Positions 1,493 to 37,050 of a stretch of 64,000 bases of DNA are shown here, piece after piece. The notes beneath the pieces are model-generated. The model searched no databases, had not been told where the DNA came from, and saw only the letters and a list, made by a program, of their open reading frames with translations. Position 1 is the first letter of the stretch. Each line of letters opens with the position of its first letter. The translations under genes and the position numbers were made by a program. The stretch comes from Perna viridis (lineage: Eukaryota): the NCBI GenBank assembly GCA_037379345.1, contig CM074520.1, positions 38,474,664 through 38,538,663 of the forward strand, given 5' to 3'.

Positions 1493-1827
1493 TTTTGACG
1501 TAACTTCATCGACCAATCATAAAAAATTGAATAATTATTTGAAGATAGAAACAATTTATTTGGGAATCTATGTTAGCAAAATAAATTACATAATCAATTC
1601 GTTATCGTGACTACTATGTAACCAAAATGTAACAACTCGTACCGGAGACGCTTGACGTAACTTATGTTTGGGAACATTAATCGACCAATCATAAAAATTG
1701 AATAATTATTTGAAGATAGAAACAATATTTTGGGGAAATCTATGTTAGCGAAATAAATTACATAATCAATTCGTTATCGTGACTACTAAGTAACCAAAAT
1801 GTAACAACTCGTGCCGAAGACGCTTGA
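1493..1827. repeat. Tandem direct duplication, 2 x ~172 bp
   Basis: ATCGACCAATCAT...GACGCTTGA is nearly identical at 1508 and 1680. Confidence 0.9.
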
Positions 1828-5611: not shown

Positions 5612-5621
5612 GACGAGCAAA

Positions 5622-5623
<2 letters not shown>

Positions 5624-5671
<48 letters not shown>
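5624..5671. repeat. (TA)n microsatellite at the 3' end of the tRNA-headed element
   Basis: Direct reading. Confidence 0.95.
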
Positions 5672-5674
<3 letters not shown>

Positions 5675-6300
5675 CGTCTCAGAATATGACGACTCTATTC
5701 ACTGCACTGCTCCATCGGATCAAATTGATACAGGGAACATATGTAAACATATAGAAAGGTCTGAAAAATTCCCAACGATGTTAGAACTGTCAAATTTGCG
5801 ATACAAATGTTTGGTCGTTCCCTCCGCGGGACTCGAACTGCGGTGACATCTATGGCAACACCGCCTGCACAAAATCCAGCGCCCTAGACCACTCGGCCAG
5901 CTAGGCTATATAAAAATATAGCTTTTGCTGGCCGGGTCATTCCTCCTCTAAGGATTAATCTAGGGCTGTAACTTAGTACATGATGTATGGTAGTTCGGGA
6001 CAGTCCATTTAGATGTTATCATGTAGGATAGAGGATCAAATTAATGATGCATGTCACAACAAATCAATATTATACAAACGTCTCAGAATTTGACGACTCT
6101 ATTCACTACACTGCTCCATCGGATCAAATTGATACAGGGAAGATATGTAAACGATAATTATATATATAGAAGGGTCTGAAAAATTCCCAACGATGTTAGA
6201 ACTGTCAAATTTGCGAAGCAAATTTTTTTCGATCCCTCCGCTGGACTCGAACTCGTACCGCTGTAACATCACGAGTCCCGCGGACGGAACGACAAAAATA
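5675..6300 (-). mobile_element. tRNA-headed non-autonomous retroelement, ~1.5 tandem units of 404 bp plus a short inverted segment
   Basis: CGTCTCAGAA...TTTGCG repeated at 5675 and 6079. The minus strand carries an A box (TGGCCGAGTGG) and B box (GTTCGAGTCC). Inverted piece at 6272-6300. Confidence 0.8.
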
Positions 6301-6767: not shown

Positions 6768-8928
6768 TAAACCTCCGCTGCCTTGCGGCTACACCCCTCG
6801 AAAGGAAAAGGCTTCAGGAGACAACCTCATGGAAAATCCAGAACTATGAATCTGTAACTTCCTACCTGTACTACCAGGATCAGAACTTCTGTTCAGAAGC
6901 TACGGGTGAGGTAACCCCGACAGACCACAACACCGAGCAGGAACAGCCAAAATGACACTTAAAACCATGAACAAACGATTTGGTGCTCGCCCTGTCAGGT
7001 CCCACCAAGGCAGGTACAGTGCCGGGCTCTCAAAGGAGCCCAACCAATGCTACTTGAGGTATCTTAGTTTTGTCTTATAGAGTCAGGGGACAAGGACAAA
7101 CAAGGAGAGCTACTGACCATATAAAGATCAAACCGAAAAGAAAAGAGCAACCACATATTAATATCGTGCAGTGGAATGCTGAAGGGGTATCAAACAAGTG
7201 AGAAGGACTTCAACGCTTCTTATTGAAAACAATGTGAACATCTGTTGTATTGAAGAAACACATCTGCAAAAGGATACCAAGTCTTCAAGAGTGATAGGAA
7301 GGAAAGAAAGAAAGGTGGTGTAATGACTCTTGGAAGAAACAATAGTAATGCCTTAGAGACAACAAAGTTTATGAAGGAAGCAGAATACATTGAAACCAAA
7401 GAAACTAATGGGAAAAGCTCGTGTAACATAGCACACGTCTACTGTCCCAATGATAAGAAACTGTCATTAGACACCATACAAATACCAGACGGTTCATTCC
7501 TCATAGTAGGTGATTTCAACAGCCAATCACAAATTTGGGAATATAATATCATGGAAAAAAGAAGGGAGACAATAGAAAACCTGCAGGATGAAAACCACCT
7601 TATCCTTGCAAACGACGCCACTGACGCGCCTACTTTTTATTCTCGTCGATGACATACAACCATCACATCAGATCTAGCTCTCTGTACTGACGATATAAAC
7701 CAACACATCAGTATAAAAGGTATGTGGCCATCTAGGAGGCAGTGATCATTGACATGTCATGACATCCACTGCAGAAATAACAGCATCTGAGTAGGCTCAG
7801 CTACCAAGATGGAATTACAAGAAGGCAAATAGGACTATGTTTCAAGCTAAACCAGATGAACTTACAAGGGACATAGAAATAGAAGAAAAGAATATTAACA
7901 ATGTGGTGAAAGCATTCAACTGTTGTATTAAAGACAGCAAAGGAAAGTATACCAAGAGGTGTAAGAAAGGACACAAGCTGGTCCAGTGAGATACAGGCAT
8001 CACACAGGGTATTCACAAGGGCAAGGGATGATGCAACAAAGATTAAATGTCAAAGAAAAGGGTGGGGAGAGAAAACATCATCTATGGATATGGAAAAGGA
8101 TTAAAAACAAAATTTGAAACTTGACAAAAGCACTGAATGGTTAAGGGAAGCAAAGGTGAAAAGATCACGCTAGAAGTTGAAGGAGAAACAACCACAGGGA
8201 AAGTGGCAGCAAATGAATTTGCTAAAGTCTATGAGAAAGAAAGCAACACTGACATACCACCATCACGGAAAAAAGAAGTAAAAACTGAATTGAAAGATCA
8301 AAGGTGCCAACACATTAACTTATGCAGAGAAATATCATCATGTTTCACATGAAGGCAGTCATCAGAAAAATTAAAATGAGAAAAGCACCAGGTCCAGATA
8401 ACATCACCAATGAAAACACCTTGGCACTTTAGCATTATCAACTGTGCTAGAGATTCTCAACCTGAGCTGGAGACAAGGTCACGTCCCTCAATGTTGGAAA
8501 GAAGCCATAATGATGCCAATACTGAAGAGGGGATATAACAAGTCGAAAGCCTCAAGTTACCGCCCAATTAGCCTAACAAGCAGGTGCTGTAATTAATGGA
8601 GCGTATAATCAACGAGCGCCTACAGACATACCCTGAATCGGAGAACATTCTTGGTCATGTCAGAAGATCAGACAAAACATCTATCTCAAGTAGTCGAGGA
8701 TGTGTTTCAATAAAAACAAATAACGCTAGCTGTCTTTGTAGATCTTCATAGAGCATTTGACAAAGTTTGAAGAGATGACCTTCTTGTGAAACTTCTTAGA
8801 TTTGGAGTAAGTGGAAGAATTTACAAATGGACCAATTCATATCTGTACAAGAGAAGGGCAAGAGTACTCGCAGATGGGAAGCATGGCCGAAAAATACTTC
8901 TAAAACAAGGTGTAACACAGGGAGAAGT
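6768..8928 (+). mobile_element. Decayed non-LTR retrotransposon (APE endonuclease + N-terminal RT, I/Ingi-like), 3'-truncated
   Basis: Motifs IVQWNAEG, ICCIEETHL, VGDFNS, APTFYSRR, KAPGPDNITNE, SYRPISLT, VFVDLHRAFDKV, QGVTQG, with many stops and frameshifts. Clade assignment is tentative. Confidence 0.85.
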
Positions 8929-21974: not shown

Positions 21975-22610
21975 CAAATTCCCAACGATGTTAGAACTGT
22001 TAAATTTGCGACTCGTACCGCTGTGACACCTATGGTAACACCGCCTGCACAAAGTCCAGTGCCATAGATCATTGGGCTAGATAGGCTGTATATAAATATA
22101 GGAGGGCCTGAAAAATTCCCAACGATATTAAAACTGTCAAAGTTGCGAAGCAAATTTGTTGGCCGTTCCCTTCTCTACAGTGAATAGAGTCGTCACATTC
22201 TGAAACGTTGTATAATATTGATTTGTTGTGACATGCATCATTAATTTGATCCTCTATCCTACAGAATAACACCTAGATGAACAGTCCCGTACTACCACAT
22301 ATCGTGTAATAATTTAAAGCCCTAGATAATTCTACGAGGAGGAATGACCCGGCCAGCCAAAGCTATATTTTAATATAGCCTAGCTGGCCGAGTGGTCTAG
22401 GGCGCTGGACTTAGTGCAGGAAGTGTTGTCATAGATCTCACAACGGTACGAGTTCGAGGGAATGACCAAAAACTTTGCTTTGCAAATTTGACAGTTCTAA
22501 CATCGTTGGGAATTTTTCAGGCCCTTCTATAAGTTAACGTTATCTTCCCTGTATCAATTTGATCCGATGGAGCAGTGTAGCGAATAGAGTCGTCACATTC
22601 TGAGACGTTG
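21975..22610 (+). mobile_element. tRNA-headed non-autonomous retroelement: inverted 5' segment (21975-22172) plus a 400-bp unit with terminal redundancy, ending at TATATA
   Basis: GAATAGAGTCGTCACATTCTGA at 22182 and 22582. A box at ~22385, B-box remnant at ~22449. Minus-strand partial copies lie upstream. Confidence 0.8.
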
Positions 22611-22825
22611 TATATATATTAAAATAGCTAGTTACAACTTCAATTTGATTTTAAGTAAGATAGTTGCCTTTGCTAATATATGCTTTTGAATTTATGTACA
22701 ACTCAATTTGTCATAAACTGAATGATGAACATCAATGAACGATACTACAGAAAATTTATGTGACCCACCAGTCGTACTGGGAATTACTTTCTACATTCAT
22801 TTTTACAGGACTATTGAGATAAGCA

Positions 22826-23589
22826 ATGGCTCAAATAGCTTCTAAAACATGTGAAATTTGTGTCAGTGCCCCAGGTGAGTATCACTGTCAGCAGTGTGAG
22901 CAAATGTTCTGCAATAACTGTAAAGTAGGACACCTTAGATCGAAGTCGGCAAGGAGTCATACATTCGTGACCGGAGAGGAAATCGACAAAGAAGTAACAC
23001 TGATCTGTGGACAACATAAAGAACTTTTCATTTACCACTGTCTTCAGTGCGATACACAAATCTGCAAAATGTGTGTCGTAAAGACTCATAAAGGCCACGA
23101 TATTTCTGAATTGTCAGAATATACCGAAAACCTTCAGAAGAACGTGAGGACAGCTATTGAGGATAAGATACAGATTTTGCAGTTAAATGCAAACCGTATT
23201 GAGAAGGGAACCAGTCAGTACAGACTCGAAGTCAAAACCGCTATTTTTACCATCACTGAAGAAGGCAATCGACTTAAACAACTTATCGATAGAAAGGTTG
23301 ATGAACTTATTCAACAGGTAAAAAAACACGAATCGGAACAGATGACGAAATTGACCACTATGCAGAACGACTTAGAAAAAGATATTGACAATGTAAAAAA
23401 GTACAAGCAACAACTTGAAACCTTCCAAAGAGGTTGTCACGATGAAACAATAAACAAGCAAATAAAGCAACTAAAATTAGATGTTGAAACGTTAACAGAT
23501 CAACTCCCAACCATGCCCACATTGTCCTACAACCCTAAACAAAGATATGAAGAAGCCATTACTGATTTGTTTGGAATTTTGGATATGAG
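22826..23589 (+). CDS. RING-less TRIM-like protein, first coding exon (B-box1, B-box2, coiled coil)
   Basis: CEIC..CQQC..C..C...H...H and CGQH..HCLQC..ICKMC..HKGH followed by a heptad-rich region. Acceptor TTTTACAG ends at 22808, donor AG|GTTAGT at 23589 (phase 2). Confidence 0.93.
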
Positions 23590-24119
23590 GTTAGTTAATT
23601 AGCAAATTAAAAAATAGGGGTACGATTTACCGAAACAAGTTATTTTTTAAATGCTTTATGGTTACATGCGTTACTAAGAGCACCATCTTCCATTTTATGT
23701 GGTCGAATTCATTGAATATATTCTGCATTCTGTCTGTGTAAGTTTTTGTCCACAACCCAATGATGTTATACTTCATCTCATATGATGGCTTCAACTTGTC
23801 AATGTTTTGTCTTATTGCTGATTGATCTTTATCCTCATCAACCAGTCGTAATGCTGCTAGCCTCAATGGCACTAATGAATATACTTAGTTGTGTAACATT
23901 GTCTCCATTGGCTTTATTTTGATCTCATTTTAAACTTCCGCGTTTCATGATGAATAACCAAAACTTGTTTGTGTGTTATTTAACGTTATATTTGTTATTT
24001 ACCACACATATGTATAGGTATTGATTACTTGTTTTAGTAATTTGTACACACGCTGTAAGTTAGGAAAGTTGTAGACTTTCAGCTTCATTTCGTGCTTATA
24101 TTTGGTGACAATTTTTAAG

Positions 24120-29720: not shown

Positions 29721-30537
29721 ATAGTACTTCCAATGTCCCTTACTTTTTTCGTTACCTAAGTTAAAGCGTTAGACCGTCTTTTAAATGATGACATTACATA
29801 TATACATTTTATGATTCACGAGTTTGGGTGTATTCAAACATTTTAGTTGTCATATTTAATGGTTGACATCAAAACATGGTATTAAATGCATATTTTATGC
29901 AATTGTGTCTCTTATCACAATCTTTATAATATTAACTCTAATGTCTGACCACTTGTGTTAAGATGATAGTTTGAAGGATTAACTCATAGTAGACCCGGTG
30001 ACGTCATCATTTAAATTTTTTCGACATATTTCAATGAATCAAACCAATACATACATTTAAAGAAATATTTTGAGTTTGTCCACTGTTACTTAAACTGTTG
30101 TAATAAATCGCGTCAGTATTAAATTATATTTCTGTATTAATCCATGAAATCTCATGATAGAAAAAAAGTCGGAAAAATTGATGGTAAAAAGGTACATAGC
30201 TATTCAATGTGATCGAAATTTGCATTCCTTGTGACGTTTAGGTTTCTCGTACGCACGATACCCAAACGCACGCTAGACGCGCACTATCAACAAATGCTCC
30301 TATCGTACGTTTAAACCCATGACAAACGAAGGCTCCATTTAAAGGCACGATAGATGAACGTGTGCATCATGCGTTCAAACGAACGATAGACAAGCAAAGA
30401 AAAATAATAATATTAGCAAATAATGAAGAAAGAAACAAAATAACAAAATAAAAGTTTATGAAATAACAAAAGCAAAAAAAAAATAATAATAAAAAAAAGC
30501 AATAGTTTAATAAAAAAAAACAGCACATATATATATA

Positions 30538-30780
30538 AAGCCTAGCTGGCCGATTGGTCTAGGGCGCTGGACTTTGTGCAGGCAGTGTTGCCATAGATGT
30601 CACTGCAGTGCGAGTTCGAGTCCCGCGGAGGGAACGACCAAAAATTTGCATCGCAAATTTGACAGTTCTAACATCGTTGGGAATTTTTCTGACATTTCTA
30701 TACGTTTATATATCTTCCTTGTATCAATTTGATCCGATGGAGCAGTGTAGCAAATAGAGTCGTCACATTCTGAGACGTTC
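30538..30780 (+). mobile_element. tRNA-headed element, SINE-like partial monomer between TA runs
   Basis: GCCTAGCTGGCCGATTGGTCTAGGGCGCTGGAC...GAGTTCGAGTCCCGC...TTCTGAGACGTTC, with (TA)n on both sides. Confidence 0.85.
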
Positions 30781-31609
30781 TATATATATAGCGGCTTTAA
30801 AGAATCTTTAATAGCGATAATGGTTTTATTCTATTGATTCTCAATACACATTACACTTGTTTACTAATCATCAGCTAATGTCTTTTTTTAAAAAAAAAAC
30901 TTGCTTTTTTGGACTAAAACAACACTTCAACCAAGCTTATTCAAATACGGATTAGTCGATTATTGTAAAATAATAATCTTACTTTATAATACTAGTCAAA
31001 TGTAACACTTTTTAACTGGTACTTTACACCAAATTGCGATTCAGATCCTTTTTAAATATGCCTTCCGGAGCGGAACGGGAGTATTTGAACGTCCAACGTA
31101 TTTCAGCGTTGACCATCGCAGATCAGCGCGACCCTCGCACTTCGGCGTTCTATTTACTGAAACTGCTCTTGACAATTCTTAACGACATATATTGAATTTG
31201 CACTGAACTGCCACTGAAATTCCACTGAAACTCATAAAACTACTGAAATTAAGCTTGTTAAGAGTTTTCAGTAGATGTTTTCAGTAAAAAAAAAATCGGC
31301 AACTAATGAACAGGAACATTACATTTTGTTAATGTGTTGTATGTTTGACTATACAATTAAACCGAAAATGGCTGCTTTTAGATAACATTAACTATTGTGT
31401 CTTTTTTACCATAGTACATTTTTTTTGTACTAAGTTCAGCATCATCATTCAAGGAATACATGAATATAACATTTACTTTAAGGGGTCCATAATTGTCATT
31501 ATTAATATAAGGCAACTATAAATATTAGCATTATTTTTTCCATGTTGCCTAATATTTGCAAAAAAAAAAAAAAAGATTTAATATCTAAATAACAGAAAAT
31601 AATTTGTAG

Positions 31610-34600
31610 GCAAACCCCTTCCCATAGAAGCCAACTTTTGGTGTTTACCTCATCCACTTCAAGGTAACTTTAGTTGTCTTCAATGGACTTGTTTCCATTG
31701 AAGCCATTAACTCAGATATTATAATCTGATGATTTTAGTATATGTTAACTTTTTTTGTTCCACTTGATGGTAATGAAACATTACTTAAATGTATAAAAGA
31801 TATCAAAAGACTAGTATACATATAAAACAGTATACATTTTGCCATGATAACCATATTGAAGGAAATGTTGTCTTCAAATAAATAAATAGCACTGTAATTT
31901 TCTAACTACAATTCTGTTACATATTGATAGATGTCAGTGTTTTATTGTGTACTTGATTCATTCGCTAAAAGTTTTGATATAGCAGCGAATTACTGCTTCG
32001 TAACAACAGATAACTGCTGTCACGTTTTAATTTTAAATCTTAAAGAAAACATTTCTCTTATTTATAGCATGTGATAATACCCCTCCATTTTGTTGCTGAA
32101 CCTGTTTTCAATAATTCCAACCAATATACTGTAAAAAAATGTCTACGAAAACTCCGTGTATATATAAAGTATAAATTATTTCATAAAAATGAAAGGAAAG
32201 GGAATCTTGTAGTTCATTCATGTGAATTTTCATTGAATCGTTCGTTGTATCAAGTCATGTTTATTATATTTATAAAACATTATTTAAAAAAAAGTGTTCA
32301 TGGAACCTGGGCATTCATTTCTTTTGGTTTATTTATGGGTTATTTACATTAAGAATTGTTTTTAGACTTGAATTTCTAATAATTTTCTAGTAAAATATTT
32401 TTCGTTAGAAAATGATGTTGTGTTCAACTCAAACCAAAATACTATGACAACTGCATTAACAAAAAATGCAATCATATAAAAACCAATACATAAAAGAGGC
32501 TTGTCTATTTGGTGATAAATTTAGTGGTTTTCAGAAATAATTGTCAGGTCAATACGTGCATTAACACAAAATATTGACTTGTTTATCAAGCTAAATTAAA
32601 CTCAAGTAGATATTGCCTTCAAAGCACAATAATAATAATCTAAGGAACGATCAGGAATTAAAAACTGCGCGAAAGCAAATACAACACAAAGCTGCAAAAA
32701 TTATGATTCCACATGGATAGTTGGCCGCTTAATTTCTGCTCATTGTGTCCAAATAAAACATTAGTTTTCTTGAACCTTACTAAATGCTTCAGGGGATATT
32801 GAATAAGTTGAAATGCATTAAAATATGATATTTATGTGATCTACTTGTGTATTTGTGTGTACATGTAGAAATTAAGAGGTCATGGAATAAGAGGAAAACT
32901 ACAATATTTCTCTGTGTTTGTTTGCTTGGTTTTTTTTCTCTGTGTTTATTTGTTTTGTTTTTGTAGATATATTATGTCTCGGTGTAAACATTTCCACCAT
33001 AGAGATGTCATTTTTCTTTAATTAGAAGAGAAGATAGCGATTTCATTTCCAAACTAATGTTTTAATGGATAGATATTGATACTAAGGATATAATGCACTG
33101 ATCCTGTTATGTAAAAAATCCACTAATTCCACCAATGACCTTTAAGAATGTACTTCAAAATAGTCCTACACTAATTTTGTTGTACTTGTGTTATGTTGCT
33201 GCGGAAAAGTGCACATCAGATCTATACAAGTGAGCTTTTGTTTTGCAGAAAATTATATTTTCTTCGTTTCTACATAAAATTGTCACTGTAACTTACTGAA
33301 TTAAATATTTGTATGAGTTCTGCATGAAGAACCCTCTTTTTTATAAAAAAAAAATGGAGGGGGCTTCCCATTCTATTGTTTACGGATTGTCTTCTAGGAG
33401 CCAGTGTCACACTGCAAGGGTAGTGAACCCCATATAATTTTTCAGGGCTATTAGTGTTAACATGCAGCTTTTAGGTGATAGATAGTCTTCTTCAGGTTAA
33501 ACTTAAAATAAAAGATCCATAACTTAGTGAAAGTAGCATTGGAGCCTATGGGAAGTGACATTAGTGGTTTATAGCGTTTGTCACTTTTTGTCCGAAATTT
33601 TAAAGTAAACCTTTCACTTATTATTAATTGCAAATTTATACTAGTATCAAGCATCCGGGAGTACGCATACATTTTATTGCATTGTACGCTGAAGGCCATT
33701 AGGGAAATCTTTATAAAATGGTTTATTTCATCCTACCTAGTAATAACTATTATGTTCATTATCCAATATATAACAATGGCTATTCATCAAACCTGTGTAT
33801 CCATTTCTTTTTGTTAACTAGTAATTCATATATTTAGATAACAATATATTTTCCAAACTTAGTTTCTCAATACTTGTCAATTGTTAAAACATTTCAGAGT
33901 ATTTTGAAGATGTTAAAGAGTAATCAAGGAAACCAAGGTTATAGAGGTAATCAAAAGACCAGACATGGAAAACAGACCTACACAACTAAGAACAAAAGAT
34001 AACCAAAATCGTACACGCAAGGTAACAAAAGCAAATGAGCAATTCGGACTCCACCAAAAAAACTGGGAGCATGGACAATTTTGAATGAAAAGTCATCACG
34101 TTTGTCGTAAAGTTTGTTTGGTCAATAGTTTTCCTTTACCGTCGATTTCTAAGTGTAGGTCAAGATATGAGGCTGACCTTACAGTGTCTGTAGTATCCTT
34201 TATCTCAAGTTCTTTGTGGTAGATGCGAGGTATTAAATCCCCGACATTAGGATTGTTTAAAGATAATACGTCCGCTATATAGCAGAAACTGAGATTAAAG
34301 GATCTAGCCAATTGATATTTTTTCTTTCGGATCAAATCAGCCATAAAGTCAGCCTATAAGAGTGAAGAAATAGGTCAGCAAGTAAAGGAGGATTATTTGT
34401 TTCCATTGGAATGTCGACCGTTTGTTGAAAAATACACCCACCACACTGGACAAATATGTTGTCGATTAAAAATTCCAGCATTTTGTAAACATCTTCCTCT
34501 GTAAATTTGAAAGATGATTTGGAATTATTTCTTACAATGTATGAGGAATCTATTCCAAGAACTATATATTTGTATCTAAGTGTACCATCTTTTTTTGGAA

Positions 34601-37050
34601 AAAAACGACGATGTATAACGTTTTTAAGTCGGAATTTTAACTGAGTATGGGGAATAGAAGTATACAGTGTTGACAAATCATAGGTTTTAATGCTTTTATA
34701 TTCTGGTAATAGTCTTGAACTGATTGTCTCCAAAAAATCTTATTATTAAAAAATTATTTAACAATACATTTAAACAATTCTTATCATAATTAAAATTTCA
34801 TAAACACTTAAAAAAAAAAATACTGAAGAAAGTATATACTTCTAAAAAGACTCCAATGAATCACAAAATACGAAGTGTCCGATATCCTTCCAGGCTTTCA
34901 GCTGACTAACACCAAATATATACTTAGTATATAACCTTACTCCCTTGACCACCTGCAACGATGTCAGTATATTAAAATGATTTGACCGTTATCAAAAATG
35001 TCTATATTGAACGTGCTATATAGTCATTGATAACGTGCGTAGAAAATCAAATGGATCGATTGGTGTTTATATATGAACAAAATGGTAAAGTAGTTTCGAA
35101 GGAATGTTGATAGATATCAGCGTCTTTTTTAGGTACGAATTAGTTCAATATTCCACAACACGTTATGCAAAATCATGCTTTAGTTCGATGAACATCTGTT
35201 TTTAAAGTCATTCCCTTTGTAGTAATACGGGTAATGTTTAAAAATTTTATTCTGTGTTTTTCCGACGCAGTCAGTATTGCTTCGCTCTTTCACTCTTTAG
35301 CCTTAAGGACGCTCTTCTATGGAAACGCAAGTCACCTGATCGCAGGTCTTATTCCCGATTTGCCAAATACTGATAACTTAGTGGCGTTCGAAAATTTGGA
35401 ATAGCGTTCGTTCAAACAACTTTATTGGAACCTTAAAAACTGCATGGCACGTGTTCGTTTCTTGAAAGAAGTGTAGAAACTTAGAAGTAAAACAGAACTC
35501 AATTTGACAGCGTCGGGTATCTTTTTTAAAGATAGTGATTGTTTTTACTTATCTCCATAATTGAGAACAGTTACCCCATAAAATTGTGATTATCTATTAG
35601 ACAACAAATGCTTATAATTTATTTGTTGATAACCTTAGATCAAATCATGATATAGGGAGAAATATTGTGATACAACTACCATTTCATAATTTGTCATGCA
35701 ATGGTCAGTTTATTTCAACTCAGATCTATAATTTCTATTTTGTTGTTCAGCCGTGGACGGTACATTTTGGTATTTTTGCATCATTTTATTTTAAAACATA
35801 ATTTCACGAATGGTTGTAATAACTTTGTTCTAGCAAAGAAAACGTATGTGACTTATTTGCATATATATAGAAGTAGATTATTATCCTGAAAATACTTGAA
35901 AACACAAAGAAAACATTTCATTATGTTTAGTTCTACTATTTATTAAGTGTGCACCTGATTTAAGTGGAAGTAAACGATATAAGCCATATTTCACGTGTAT
36001 TATAACAGACATGGTATATTTTACAATGGAGACAAATTTTCGTCGAGTTTATTTTAAAATCAGTAATACTACCAATTTACTCGTGGAATGTGTTTATACA
36101 CGTAACAGGCCATTACAATTTACAGAAAGTGCTGCCTGTTTTCTTTTAATGGTAAACTCAAGATGATGTCAAATCAATTCATATTTTCCGATTGTAGCAA
36201 ATTTTCAGATAAAACCCATTTTAGGCAATAATGTATATAGTATCACAGATGTTATTCTGGGTCGGATAAAATTGCAAAACATTGACTAGAATTGATTTGA
36301 AACATTTCAAGAATGAATTCAAAATGATAAAGTATGTGTCTGATTCCTATTTAACAACACGCTATTGATTGAACGTAGACCTGATATGTTAATTCTGTTT
36401 GAAACAATTACATAATATGACAAAAGTATTTGATAAGAATTTGATTAAATATGTTGTAATTTAAAACTTTAAACTTTGCATACTCAGTGTTATTTTTTTT
36501 TTGTGCTTTTTTGAGTGTGCGGAACAAATTACGCACACTCTAAACATTCTTTGCTACTCGTGACCATATTTTCCTTTTTCACTCCATCTAGTTATTTAAA
36601 ATATTAATCATGTTATTCTTTTGGTTACTTTGTGTGTTATTTTCGGAGTTATTAGAGGCAATACTTGGCATCTATTACAGTAATGGATGAATGTCGCCTC
36701 GTGCTGCTGTTCATGGTACCATGACATATAATAACATTTGTGATGTATGACTTACAGATAAAACGTAAACGTAAATGCTTTTCTTATAACTTATTGCAAA
36801 GAAGTACTACCAGTATCTAGTAAAGATATGATAAACCCGATTTTTCTGGAGGCATTTTTAAAATTTATAAATAGTGAAACCAATAATAGTGAATATAACG
36901 TTGATCGCCCTTTAGTTTTTATCATTTATTATATATCCTATAACTAGATATTTCAATGTAATTTCTTTATCATGATAAATGATATTATATATGTAGCAAA
37001 ATACATTGACTGCCCAGCTATTTATGCAGATTTTCTGTTGTTTGTAATAT
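31610..37050 (+). repeat. Local segmental duplication, copy B
   Basis: 31610-34860 matches 10800-14095. 34400-35420, 36340-36670 and 36870-37050 match 52700-54485. Confidence 0.85.
33917..34740 (-). mobile_element. Naiad-type Penelope-like element RT fragment plus tail, internally deleted
   Basis: TYDLSTLYTSIPH, LEFLIDNIFV, IPMETNNPPLLADLFL, YIADVLSLNN, ASYLDLHLEID. Confidence 0.9.

Follow-up and report, generated by a model that had tools for sequence, protein, structure and literature searches.

The locus at 21975-22612 of a 64,000-nucleotide stretch of Perna viridis DNA (contig CM074520.1; the whole stretch is called the window below) raises the question of how a short non-coding repeat with a tRNA-like segment came to lie beside TA repeats as a partial tandem with flipped pieces, and which enzymes copied it. 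The original prediction was of a tRNA-headed, Pol III-driven element mobilised by Penelope-like elements (PLEs). From the analysis below, the repeat is probably a 410-bp non-autonomous retroelement that is copied by the reverse transcriptase and the GIY-YIG endonuclease of PLEs in the same genome. Its insertion at TA repeats, in partial tandems that include flipped pieces, is the habit of PLEs and makes a PLE parasite, and not an ordinary SINE, the most likely reading.

Structure of the three loci in the window

A unit of 410 bp is common to three loci of the window, as had been predicted, and was recovered by direct reading, by a repeat finder and by BLAST to the consensus. It consists of a linker, a tRNA-like segment with A and B boxes, a body and a tail, the terminus of which is GAGACG|TTGTATA+(TA)n. 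All three loci end in ...GTCGTCA[ACT]ATTCTGAGACG followed by a TA run, which confirmed the claim of one and the same terminus beside TA repeats; the strings TGGCCGAGTGGTCTAGGGCG and GTTCGAGTCC were both found in the window sequence. Loci 1 and 2 are partial tandems, arranged head to tail, and have inverted pieces at the 5' end. Their periods, predicted as 404 and 400 bp, were about 403 at locus 1 and exactly 400 at locus 2 (direct repeat D1 of the repeat finder), and the inverted 5' segment expected in both was located at 6272-6298 and 21976-22171, respectively.

Locus 2 opens with three inverted pieces on the minus strand (consensus positions are prefixed with c). The first (21976-22011; inverted repeat I3) runs from c318 to c283 in the body and is a 97% BLAST match to the consensus, and the second (22011-22101; I1, 80% complementary) is the tRNA-like segment reversed, from c247 to c157, with 87% identity to the consensus. 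The third (22097-22171; I2, 88%) runs from c334 to c261 and is bounded on the outside by c334, the alternative 3' terminus, beside a TA-rich stretch. The upstream partial unit, or 'pseudo-LTR' copy, follows on the plus strand at about 22179-22207 (to 22212); it is 5'-truncated to 29 nt of tail (c382-410) and leads into the full unit at about 22208-22607 (to 22612; plus strand), which is 93% identical to the 410-bp consensus. Within the full unit the plus-strand linker (22208-22364) is succeeded by the tRNA-like segment (about 22365-22470, plus strand), with the A box at 22385-22395 and a partly deleted B box at 22449-22455, and by a run of five T (T5) on the plus strand at 22513-22517, after which the body and the tail continue to GAGACG. 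The 3' extension TTGTATA (22608-22619, plus strand) merges into a remnant of the (TA)n target, so that the end reads GAGACG TTGTATA TATAT.

Locus 1 lies on the minus strand. Its full unit (5675-6077) ends at a long (TA)n run (about 5612-5674) and is the only one in the window with both Pol III boxes intact (5829-5899). An upstream partial unit at 6077-6270 (minus strand; c228-412, 5'-truncated) is joined to it head to tail, and a 27-nt inverted piece (6272-6298, plus strand; c249-275) forms a snap-back at the 5' end. Locus 3 is a 5'-truncated solo copy on the plus strand (30527-30782; c159-415), which starts at the TA-rich site shortly before its A box, has TA runs on both flanks and carries one point change in the A box. 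An equivalent solo copy (c158-412) is present at the genomic locus L054.

Two subfamilies of the unit were distinguished around c330-350: TATAAGTTTACGTTATC marks the young, major subfamily and TATACGTTTACATATC the older one, to which window loci 1 (5675-6270) and 3 (30527-30782) belong; the subfamily comparison also used L051, L005, L008, L025 and L053. An open reading frame of 258 aa with two B-box zinc fingers, transcribed on the plus strand, occupies 22826-23602 (plus strand), about 210 bp downstream of the unit at locus 2. The locus 2 complex and its flank have a second copy (L002) 216 kb upstream on the same contig with 99% identity, which by sequence comparison is a recent segmental duplication.

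A young and abundant family with two 3' termini

The window's own genome (723 Mb) was searched for the unit. The first look returned 2,115 candidates, the best 40 of which were about 90% identical to the window copy, and a consensus of 410 bp was made from 29 genomic copies. As the copies are 96-98% identical to this consensus, the family is young. The consensus comprises the linker (c1-158), the A box TGGCCGAGTGG (c179-189), the B box AGTTCGAGTCC (c244-254), the body and a tail ending in ...GTCGTCACATTCTGAGACG.

Genome-wide pattern counts allowed up to two mismatches, and the reversed-pattern control was 0 in every case. A 25-mer of the unit tail had 5,571 matches against 0 for its reversed control. 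A tail running directly into the next unit was matched 1,198 times, and a tail followed by TTGTATA(TA)n, the canonical terminus, 974 times. The internal site c334 (..CAGACCCTTCTATA) followed by (TA)n had 1,233 matches; a control TA-rich site at c160-172, which is without the AGAC..TT context, was followed by (TA)n in 11 matches. The unit family is thus real and far above chance.

The 3' ends of the unit lie at two sites, the c410/c1 boundary and the internal c334, which share the context AGAC-N1-3-TT-S-TATAA; the termini read GAGACGTTG|TATA and CAGACCCTTC|TATA. The junction GAGACG TTGTATA(TA)n was present in nearly all copies examined. Of the 34 exact c334-plus-TA matches listed for C1 and C2, 6 lie 318-324 bp past a tail-to-c1 junction and represent arrays that end at c334. 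A number of the c334-plus-TA matches reflect small TA expansions inside the unit, the upstream copy of window locus 1 being an example; among the loci with sequence examined they were mostly true ends, and the loose ends of RNA-seq reads, which enter (TA)n at both termini, agree. At the level of coordinates, same-strand tail pairs were also found 476-516 bp apart and not at about 410 bp (C1 126093/126609, 566595/567092 and 45986309/45986785), a spacing that suggests a longer-period variant or internal expansions.

Insertion architecture

The structure of the insertions was compared across 28 non-redundant top loci, a sample biased towards whole-unit copies since the loci had been chosen for holding a full unit. 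A 5'-truncated partial unit abuts the full unit in 21 of these 28, with a 5' start that varies from c75 to c390, and about half of the 28 have one or more inverted pieces further upstream. The inverted pieces have an outward-facing 3' terminus, at c410 or c334, each with its own TA run. The 5' ends of the pieces concentrate at c152-228, in the tRNA-like segment and the stretch just before it. TA runs adjoin the complexes nearly always on the 3' flank and in about half of the cases on the 5' flank. The arrays are dispersed and measure 1.1-2.7 units, more than 2-3 units being rare, and the unit-unit junctions are always precise. Less biased complexes, from the window, its flanks and the PLE loci, showed the same kinds of structure together with many short 3' fragments.

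The prediction of a non-coding retroelement associated with TA microsatellites and inserted in the style of Penelope was well founded: the 3' end is constant, an upstream tandem copy is 5'-truncated at variable positions and inverted pieces occur at the 5' end. The sampled loci, mostly selected for a full unit, were largely partial tandems with inverted pieces and not simple monomers with a LINE-like tail. The published signature of PLEs comprises a constant 3' end, 5' truncation and a second, 5'-truncated tandem copy, the pseudo-LTR (PMC8557442, Craig et al. 2021; PMC8969392, Goubert et al. 2022), as well as a frequent inverted 5'-truncated upstream copy, a short 3' extension and a strong microsatellite bias; for non-autonomous PLE derivatives, multicopy head-to-tail insertions are described (PMC8557442; PMC8969392). 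The bias is towards (TA)n in Naiads, and for Neptune a CX2-5CxxC linker has been invoked (PMC8557442; PMC8969392).

The relatedness of the partial and the full unit of one insertion (mean identity 94.4%, compared with 93.1% to other loci) was uninformative in this star-like, young family. The idea that the linker consists of rearranged pieces of the rest of the unit was dropped, the similarity not being significant.

The tRNA-like module and the predicted transcription by Pol III

The A/B-box pattern, expected 0.00 times per window by chance, is present in most copies. The tRNA-like segment was accordingly probably derived from a class II tRNA, and presumably resembles the D-arm sequences of tRNA-Leu or tRNA-Ser. 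The description of the element as tRNA-headed was not supported: the boxes are internal to the 410-bp unit (c179-254), ARAGORN called no tRNA in the window and 50 loci, and the 131-nt tRNA-like part had no match to the Rfam tRNA model at E<=10.

Transcription by Pol III, also predicted, fared no better, given the conserved sense-strand T5 runs and two-stranded RNA-seq coverage without defined ends. Pol III is known to terminate at runs of at least four T. One T5 run on the sense strand (c316-320), about 140 nt downstream, is kept in 44 of 46 copies, and a second lies at c164-168, just upstream of the boxes. A Pol III transcript from the boxes would therefore be about 150 nt long and lack the tail, because of the downstream T5 run; and since such runs would stop the transcript before the tail is reached, the RNA that is reverse transcribed is unlikely to be a Pol III product. 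Most likely, the A and B boxes are left over from a tRNA-derived ancestor, or serve at most as the promoter of a short (about 150 nt), non-mobile RNA, and they are unlikely to drive the template of retrotransposition.

These observations bear on the simplest alternative, an ordinary tRNA-derived SINE, transcribed by Pol III and mobilised by a LINE, whose tandems and inversions arose by template switching, twin priming or repeated hits at TA. Twin priming is known for LINE-1, and the A and B boxes retain a tRNA-like spacing in most copies; moreover, the solo copies at 30527-30782 and at L054 start just upstream of the A box, and the clustering of piece 5' ends at c152-228 points the same way. 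The unit also resembles tRNA-derived SINEs (PMC11481361, PMC4758252) in its class II-type boxes, its length (a few hundred bp) and its 3' microsatellite. Unlike them, it has most copies not starting at the tRNA part, boxes that are internal to the repeated unit, no tRNA fold, and, in the loci sampled, a tail that ends in TTGTATA(TA)n in place of poly(A) or a LINE-type tail; internal T5 terminators on the sense strand are kept almost throughout. Partial tandems and inversions prevail in the loci sampled, against no more than about 3% tandem or palindromic copies in bivalve tRNA-SINEs (PMC11481361), and the unit has its 3' ends at two particular TA sites, as in PLEs. We consider a LINE-mobilised SINE unlikely.

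Ribozymes, RNA folding and RNA-seq

Scans against Rfam at lax thresholds (E<=10 and E<=1) revealed neither a tRNA nor any hammerhead, twister, HDV-like or other ribozyme in the locus, in seven family loci including their tandem junctions or in the 131-nt tRNA-like part. A hand-written scan for a minimal hammerhead (CUGANGA, helix II, GAAA) likewise gave 0 hits in about 60 unit copies. The same scan made seven hits in about 280 kb, all in the 3' UTRs of one of the PLE families described below (PLE-B), and these serve as a positive control for the absence of the hammerhead from the unit. The original statement that no canonical hammerhead is present was thus supported by both approaches. Rfam detected no known ribozyme in 12 PLE loci, the gathering threshold having missed the PLE-B motif.

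The motif in the PLE-B 3' UTRs is minimal and hammerhead-like: CUGAAGA, helix II and GAAAG are followed by a palindrome (GUAC or AGCGCU), and three helix II sequences occur, with the pairing kept in all. It was located at L049:6652-6890 (minus), L051:7640-7878 (plus) and L054:7385-7640 (plus), and in L055 (both strands), L050 and L053. A candidate 'dead hammerhead' in the unit tail (CCGATGG..GCAGTG..GAAT) was rejected; two core positions are wrong, helix II is absent and there is no significant alignment to the hammerhead region of PLE-B.

The RNA of the unit folds somewhat better than shuffled sequences (z -3.2), mostly owing to a palindrome around c140-188, and the unit junction folds worse than shuffles (z +1.9). 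The palindrome is imperfect, 16-17 bp long (window 22347-22393; GGCCAGCGAAAGCTATA / TATAGCCTAGCTGGCC), encloses the T5 run just before the A box and yields weak, spurious microRNA matches in Rfam.

Two stranded RNA-seq runs were examined; an exon of a neighbouring gene was covered on one strand only, which shows that the libraries are stranded. Coverage of the unit family was two-stranded, the sense strand exceeding the antisense about 1.1-1.8 times, and in neither run did a site stand out by a pile-up of molecule starts or ends. Reads cross the unit junction and are indistinguishable from transcripts of genomic tandems. The pattern looks like passive transcription of dispersed copies and lends support neither to site-specific cleavage nor to a discrete Pol III RNA, although an RNA of 150 nt would escape the libraries.

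A second alternative is a retrozyme-like cycle without a hammerhead, in which the unit RNA would be excised, circularised (perhaps by tRNA-processing enzymes) and copied by a PLE reverse transcriptase in rolling-circle fashion, the insertion product being a unit and a fraction of another. A cycle by way of circular RNA and a PLE reverse transcriptase has been proposed for metazoan retrozymes (PMC7229834). The precise unit junctions are in keeping with such a cycle, as are the insertions of 1.1 to 2.7 units, which need a multimeric template regenerated in each generation, the junction-spanning RNA reads and the favourable fold of the unit RNA (z -3.2). Genomic tandems explain the junction reads equally well, however, and no known self-cleaving ribozyme was detected in units or tandem junctions even at lax thresholds, with minimal-hammerhead counts of 0 in about 60 unit copies versus 7 in PLE-B. 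RNA-seq has no site at which many molecules begin or end, the junction folds poorly (z +1.9) and the tRNA-like part is not recognised as tRNA. This cycle appears quite improbable. A more specific version, a ribozyme-less retrozyme counterpart in which host tRNA processing would cut the multimers, tRNA ligase would circularise the units and the PLE reverse transcriptase would copy them as a rolling circle with telomerase-like alignment of TA on AGAC..UU-S-UAUAA, is a speculative idea that we regard as very unlikely to be correct.

Metazoan non-LTR retrozymes (Cervera & de la Pena 2020, PMC7229834; Li et al. 2026, 10.64898/2026.07.22.740005) resemble the unit in being small (150-450 bp), AT-rich and tandem, and in their presumed dependence on PLEs. 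A type I hammerhead in every unit and the formation of circular RNAs are their defining features; the unit described here, by comparison, is without a known ribozyme, no defined RNA ends were seen, and its arrays are short (1.1-2.7 units) and dispersed, unlike those of retrozymes. A further comparison is offered by Schistosoma Sm-alpha, which Ferbeyre et al. in 1998 reportedly described as SINE-like, with a tRNA-type Pol III promoter, also tandem and with an active hammerhead. The unit differs from Sm-alpha in lacking the hammerhead and in having boxes that are internal and followed by a T5 terminator.

Finally, a DNA-level repeat, that is, a short satellite or Helitron-like element propagated by recombination or slippage at TA microsatellites without an RNA intermediate, would suit the tandem arrangement and the TA/AT-type flanks, Helitrons being known to insert at AT and to form tandem composites, but is largely refuted and exceedingly improbable: a constant 3' end with variable 5' truncation over thousands of dispersed loci is a hallmark of target-primed reverse transcription, Helitron termini (5' TC, 3' CTRR and hairpin) are lacking, the 3' end being GAGACGTTGTATA and the 5' ends variable, the junction and tail region is unstructured, arrays rarely exceed 2-3 units, and the inverted pieces have their own outward-facing 3' termini.

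Penelope-like elements in the same genome

Searches for GIY-YIG and translations of open reading frames identified two PLE families, PLE-A and PLE-B, with a C-terminal GIY-YIG endonuclease after a CX4CxxC motif. By the criterion of this motif and the C-terminal endonuclease both are classed as Neptune-like. PLE-A ends in ..CCTTTAGACTT (..AGACTT), and a TA-rich stretch comes next in 4 of 6 sampled ends, two of which lie in L056 and are parts of a single duplicated block. The terminus of PLE-B is ..GAC(AAC/GAA/AAA), with (TA)n after it in 4 of 4 copies. A terminal GAC-N2-5-TA pattern is common to the unit, PLE-A and PLE-B, a resemblance that was spotted post hoc.

The unit and these PLEs are frequently neighbours. 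The unit was found within 1.5 kb at 10 of 18 GIY-YIG loci, and a PLE-A-type endonuclease within 1.5 kb at three or four of 28 unit loci, both figures being far above the background density. The neighbours are arranged tail to tail across one TA run at L049, L052, L014, L009 and L054, and in the same orientation at L051 and L056. This arrangement fits a shared (TA)n target, which alone can explain the physical association, and is no proof of co-mobilisation.

At L056, a 62-nt mini-piece (c387-410 plus c1-38, with similarity to about c50) spans the unit junction (1499-1560, plus strand; 6808-6869, minus strand). It lies directly after (TA)5 at a PLE-A 3' end, in the same orientation and within the duplicated block, and could have arisen either as a chimera by template switching or as a tiny insertion of its own.

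Comparison of the unit with the 3' UTRs of PLE-A and PLE-B, which represent few of the PLE families of this genome, showed no homology beyond a few terminal bases (nhmmer; Smith-Waterman with shuffles). Published non-autonomous PLE derivatives usually share a pLTR or the 3' end with their partner (PMC8557442), and the lack of detected 3'-UTR homology to PLE-A and PLE-B counts against the PLE reading as far as sequence comparison goes. Because of this lack of homology, the partner is one that we infer: a Neptune-like element, PLE-A or PLE-B, would mobilise the unit in trans.

Naiad-type PLEs, with the order GIY-YIG, CxC, RT (L043, L060), are also present and extremely abundant (58,166 first-look candidates genome-wide). 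The window itself contains four Naiad-type RT fragments, at 39614-40979 (plus) and, on the minus strand, at 34047-34739, 59892-60407 and 52669-53002, which are 53-86% identical to the L060 ORF. The Naiad family N1 was rejected as the partner, its 3' end (..CCTTGATTACTCC) not being at a TA run.

A model for the insertion of the unit

The architecture and the termini can be accommodated in a scheme of PLE-mediated insertion. The PLE endonuclease would nick a (TA)n microsatellite, and the exposed TA 3' end may then anneal by microhomology to the UAUAA of the element RNA at either AGAC-N1-3-UU-S-UAUAA site (c410/c1 or c334). Reverse transcription would cover more than one unit length of a template that is multimeric or regenerated by template jumping. 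Synthesis of the cDNA would stop at variable points, often in the GC-rich tRNA-like part or slightly upstream of it, leaving a 5'-truncated partial unit and a full unit. The other nicked strand may often prime a second cDNA, from which the inverted 5' piece and the outward-facing TA run beside it would arise. As every insertion is 5'-truncated, the tandem state must be regenerated in each cycle; this could occur by template jumping, as is presumed for the pseudo-LTRs of PLEs, or by rolling-circle copying of a circular RNA.

Relation to known elements and significance

The closest parallels are the non-autonomous derivatives of PLEs, MRC1 and other non-autonomous Chlamys elements (PMC8557442), which like the unit are non-coding and form pseudo-LTR partial tandems, or insertions of several copies head to tail, with inverted pieces, have a microsatellite bias and are without a canonical hammerhead. 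The non-autonomous Chlamys elements share 3'-end sequence with an autonomous family, whereas the unit has only the terminal GAC-N-TA in common with the local PLEs. A tRNA-like A/B-box module and the use of either of two 3' priming sites also set the unit apart from these derivatives. Its most plausible reading is that of a non-autonomous, PLE-dependent element that targets TA, lacks a hammerhead and retains a relic tRNA-type promoter.

Such repeats are liable to be mislabelled as SINEs or satellites, which is a warning for annotation. As a probable PLE parasite, the unit shows that these parasites need not carry a hammerhead and so widens the concept of the retrozyme. The integration of PLEs, with its pseudo-LTRs, inverted copies and microsatellite targeting, is still unexplained, and an experimental system has been called for (Craig et al. 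2021, PMC8557442). The two-site rule for the 3' ends offers a testable candidate for the signal by which a TERT-related reverse transcriptase recognises or aligns the 3' end, and this short, young and abundant family, which bears the PLE signature in full, provides thousands of natural events in which 3' priming, 5' stops and second-strand priming can be read base by base.
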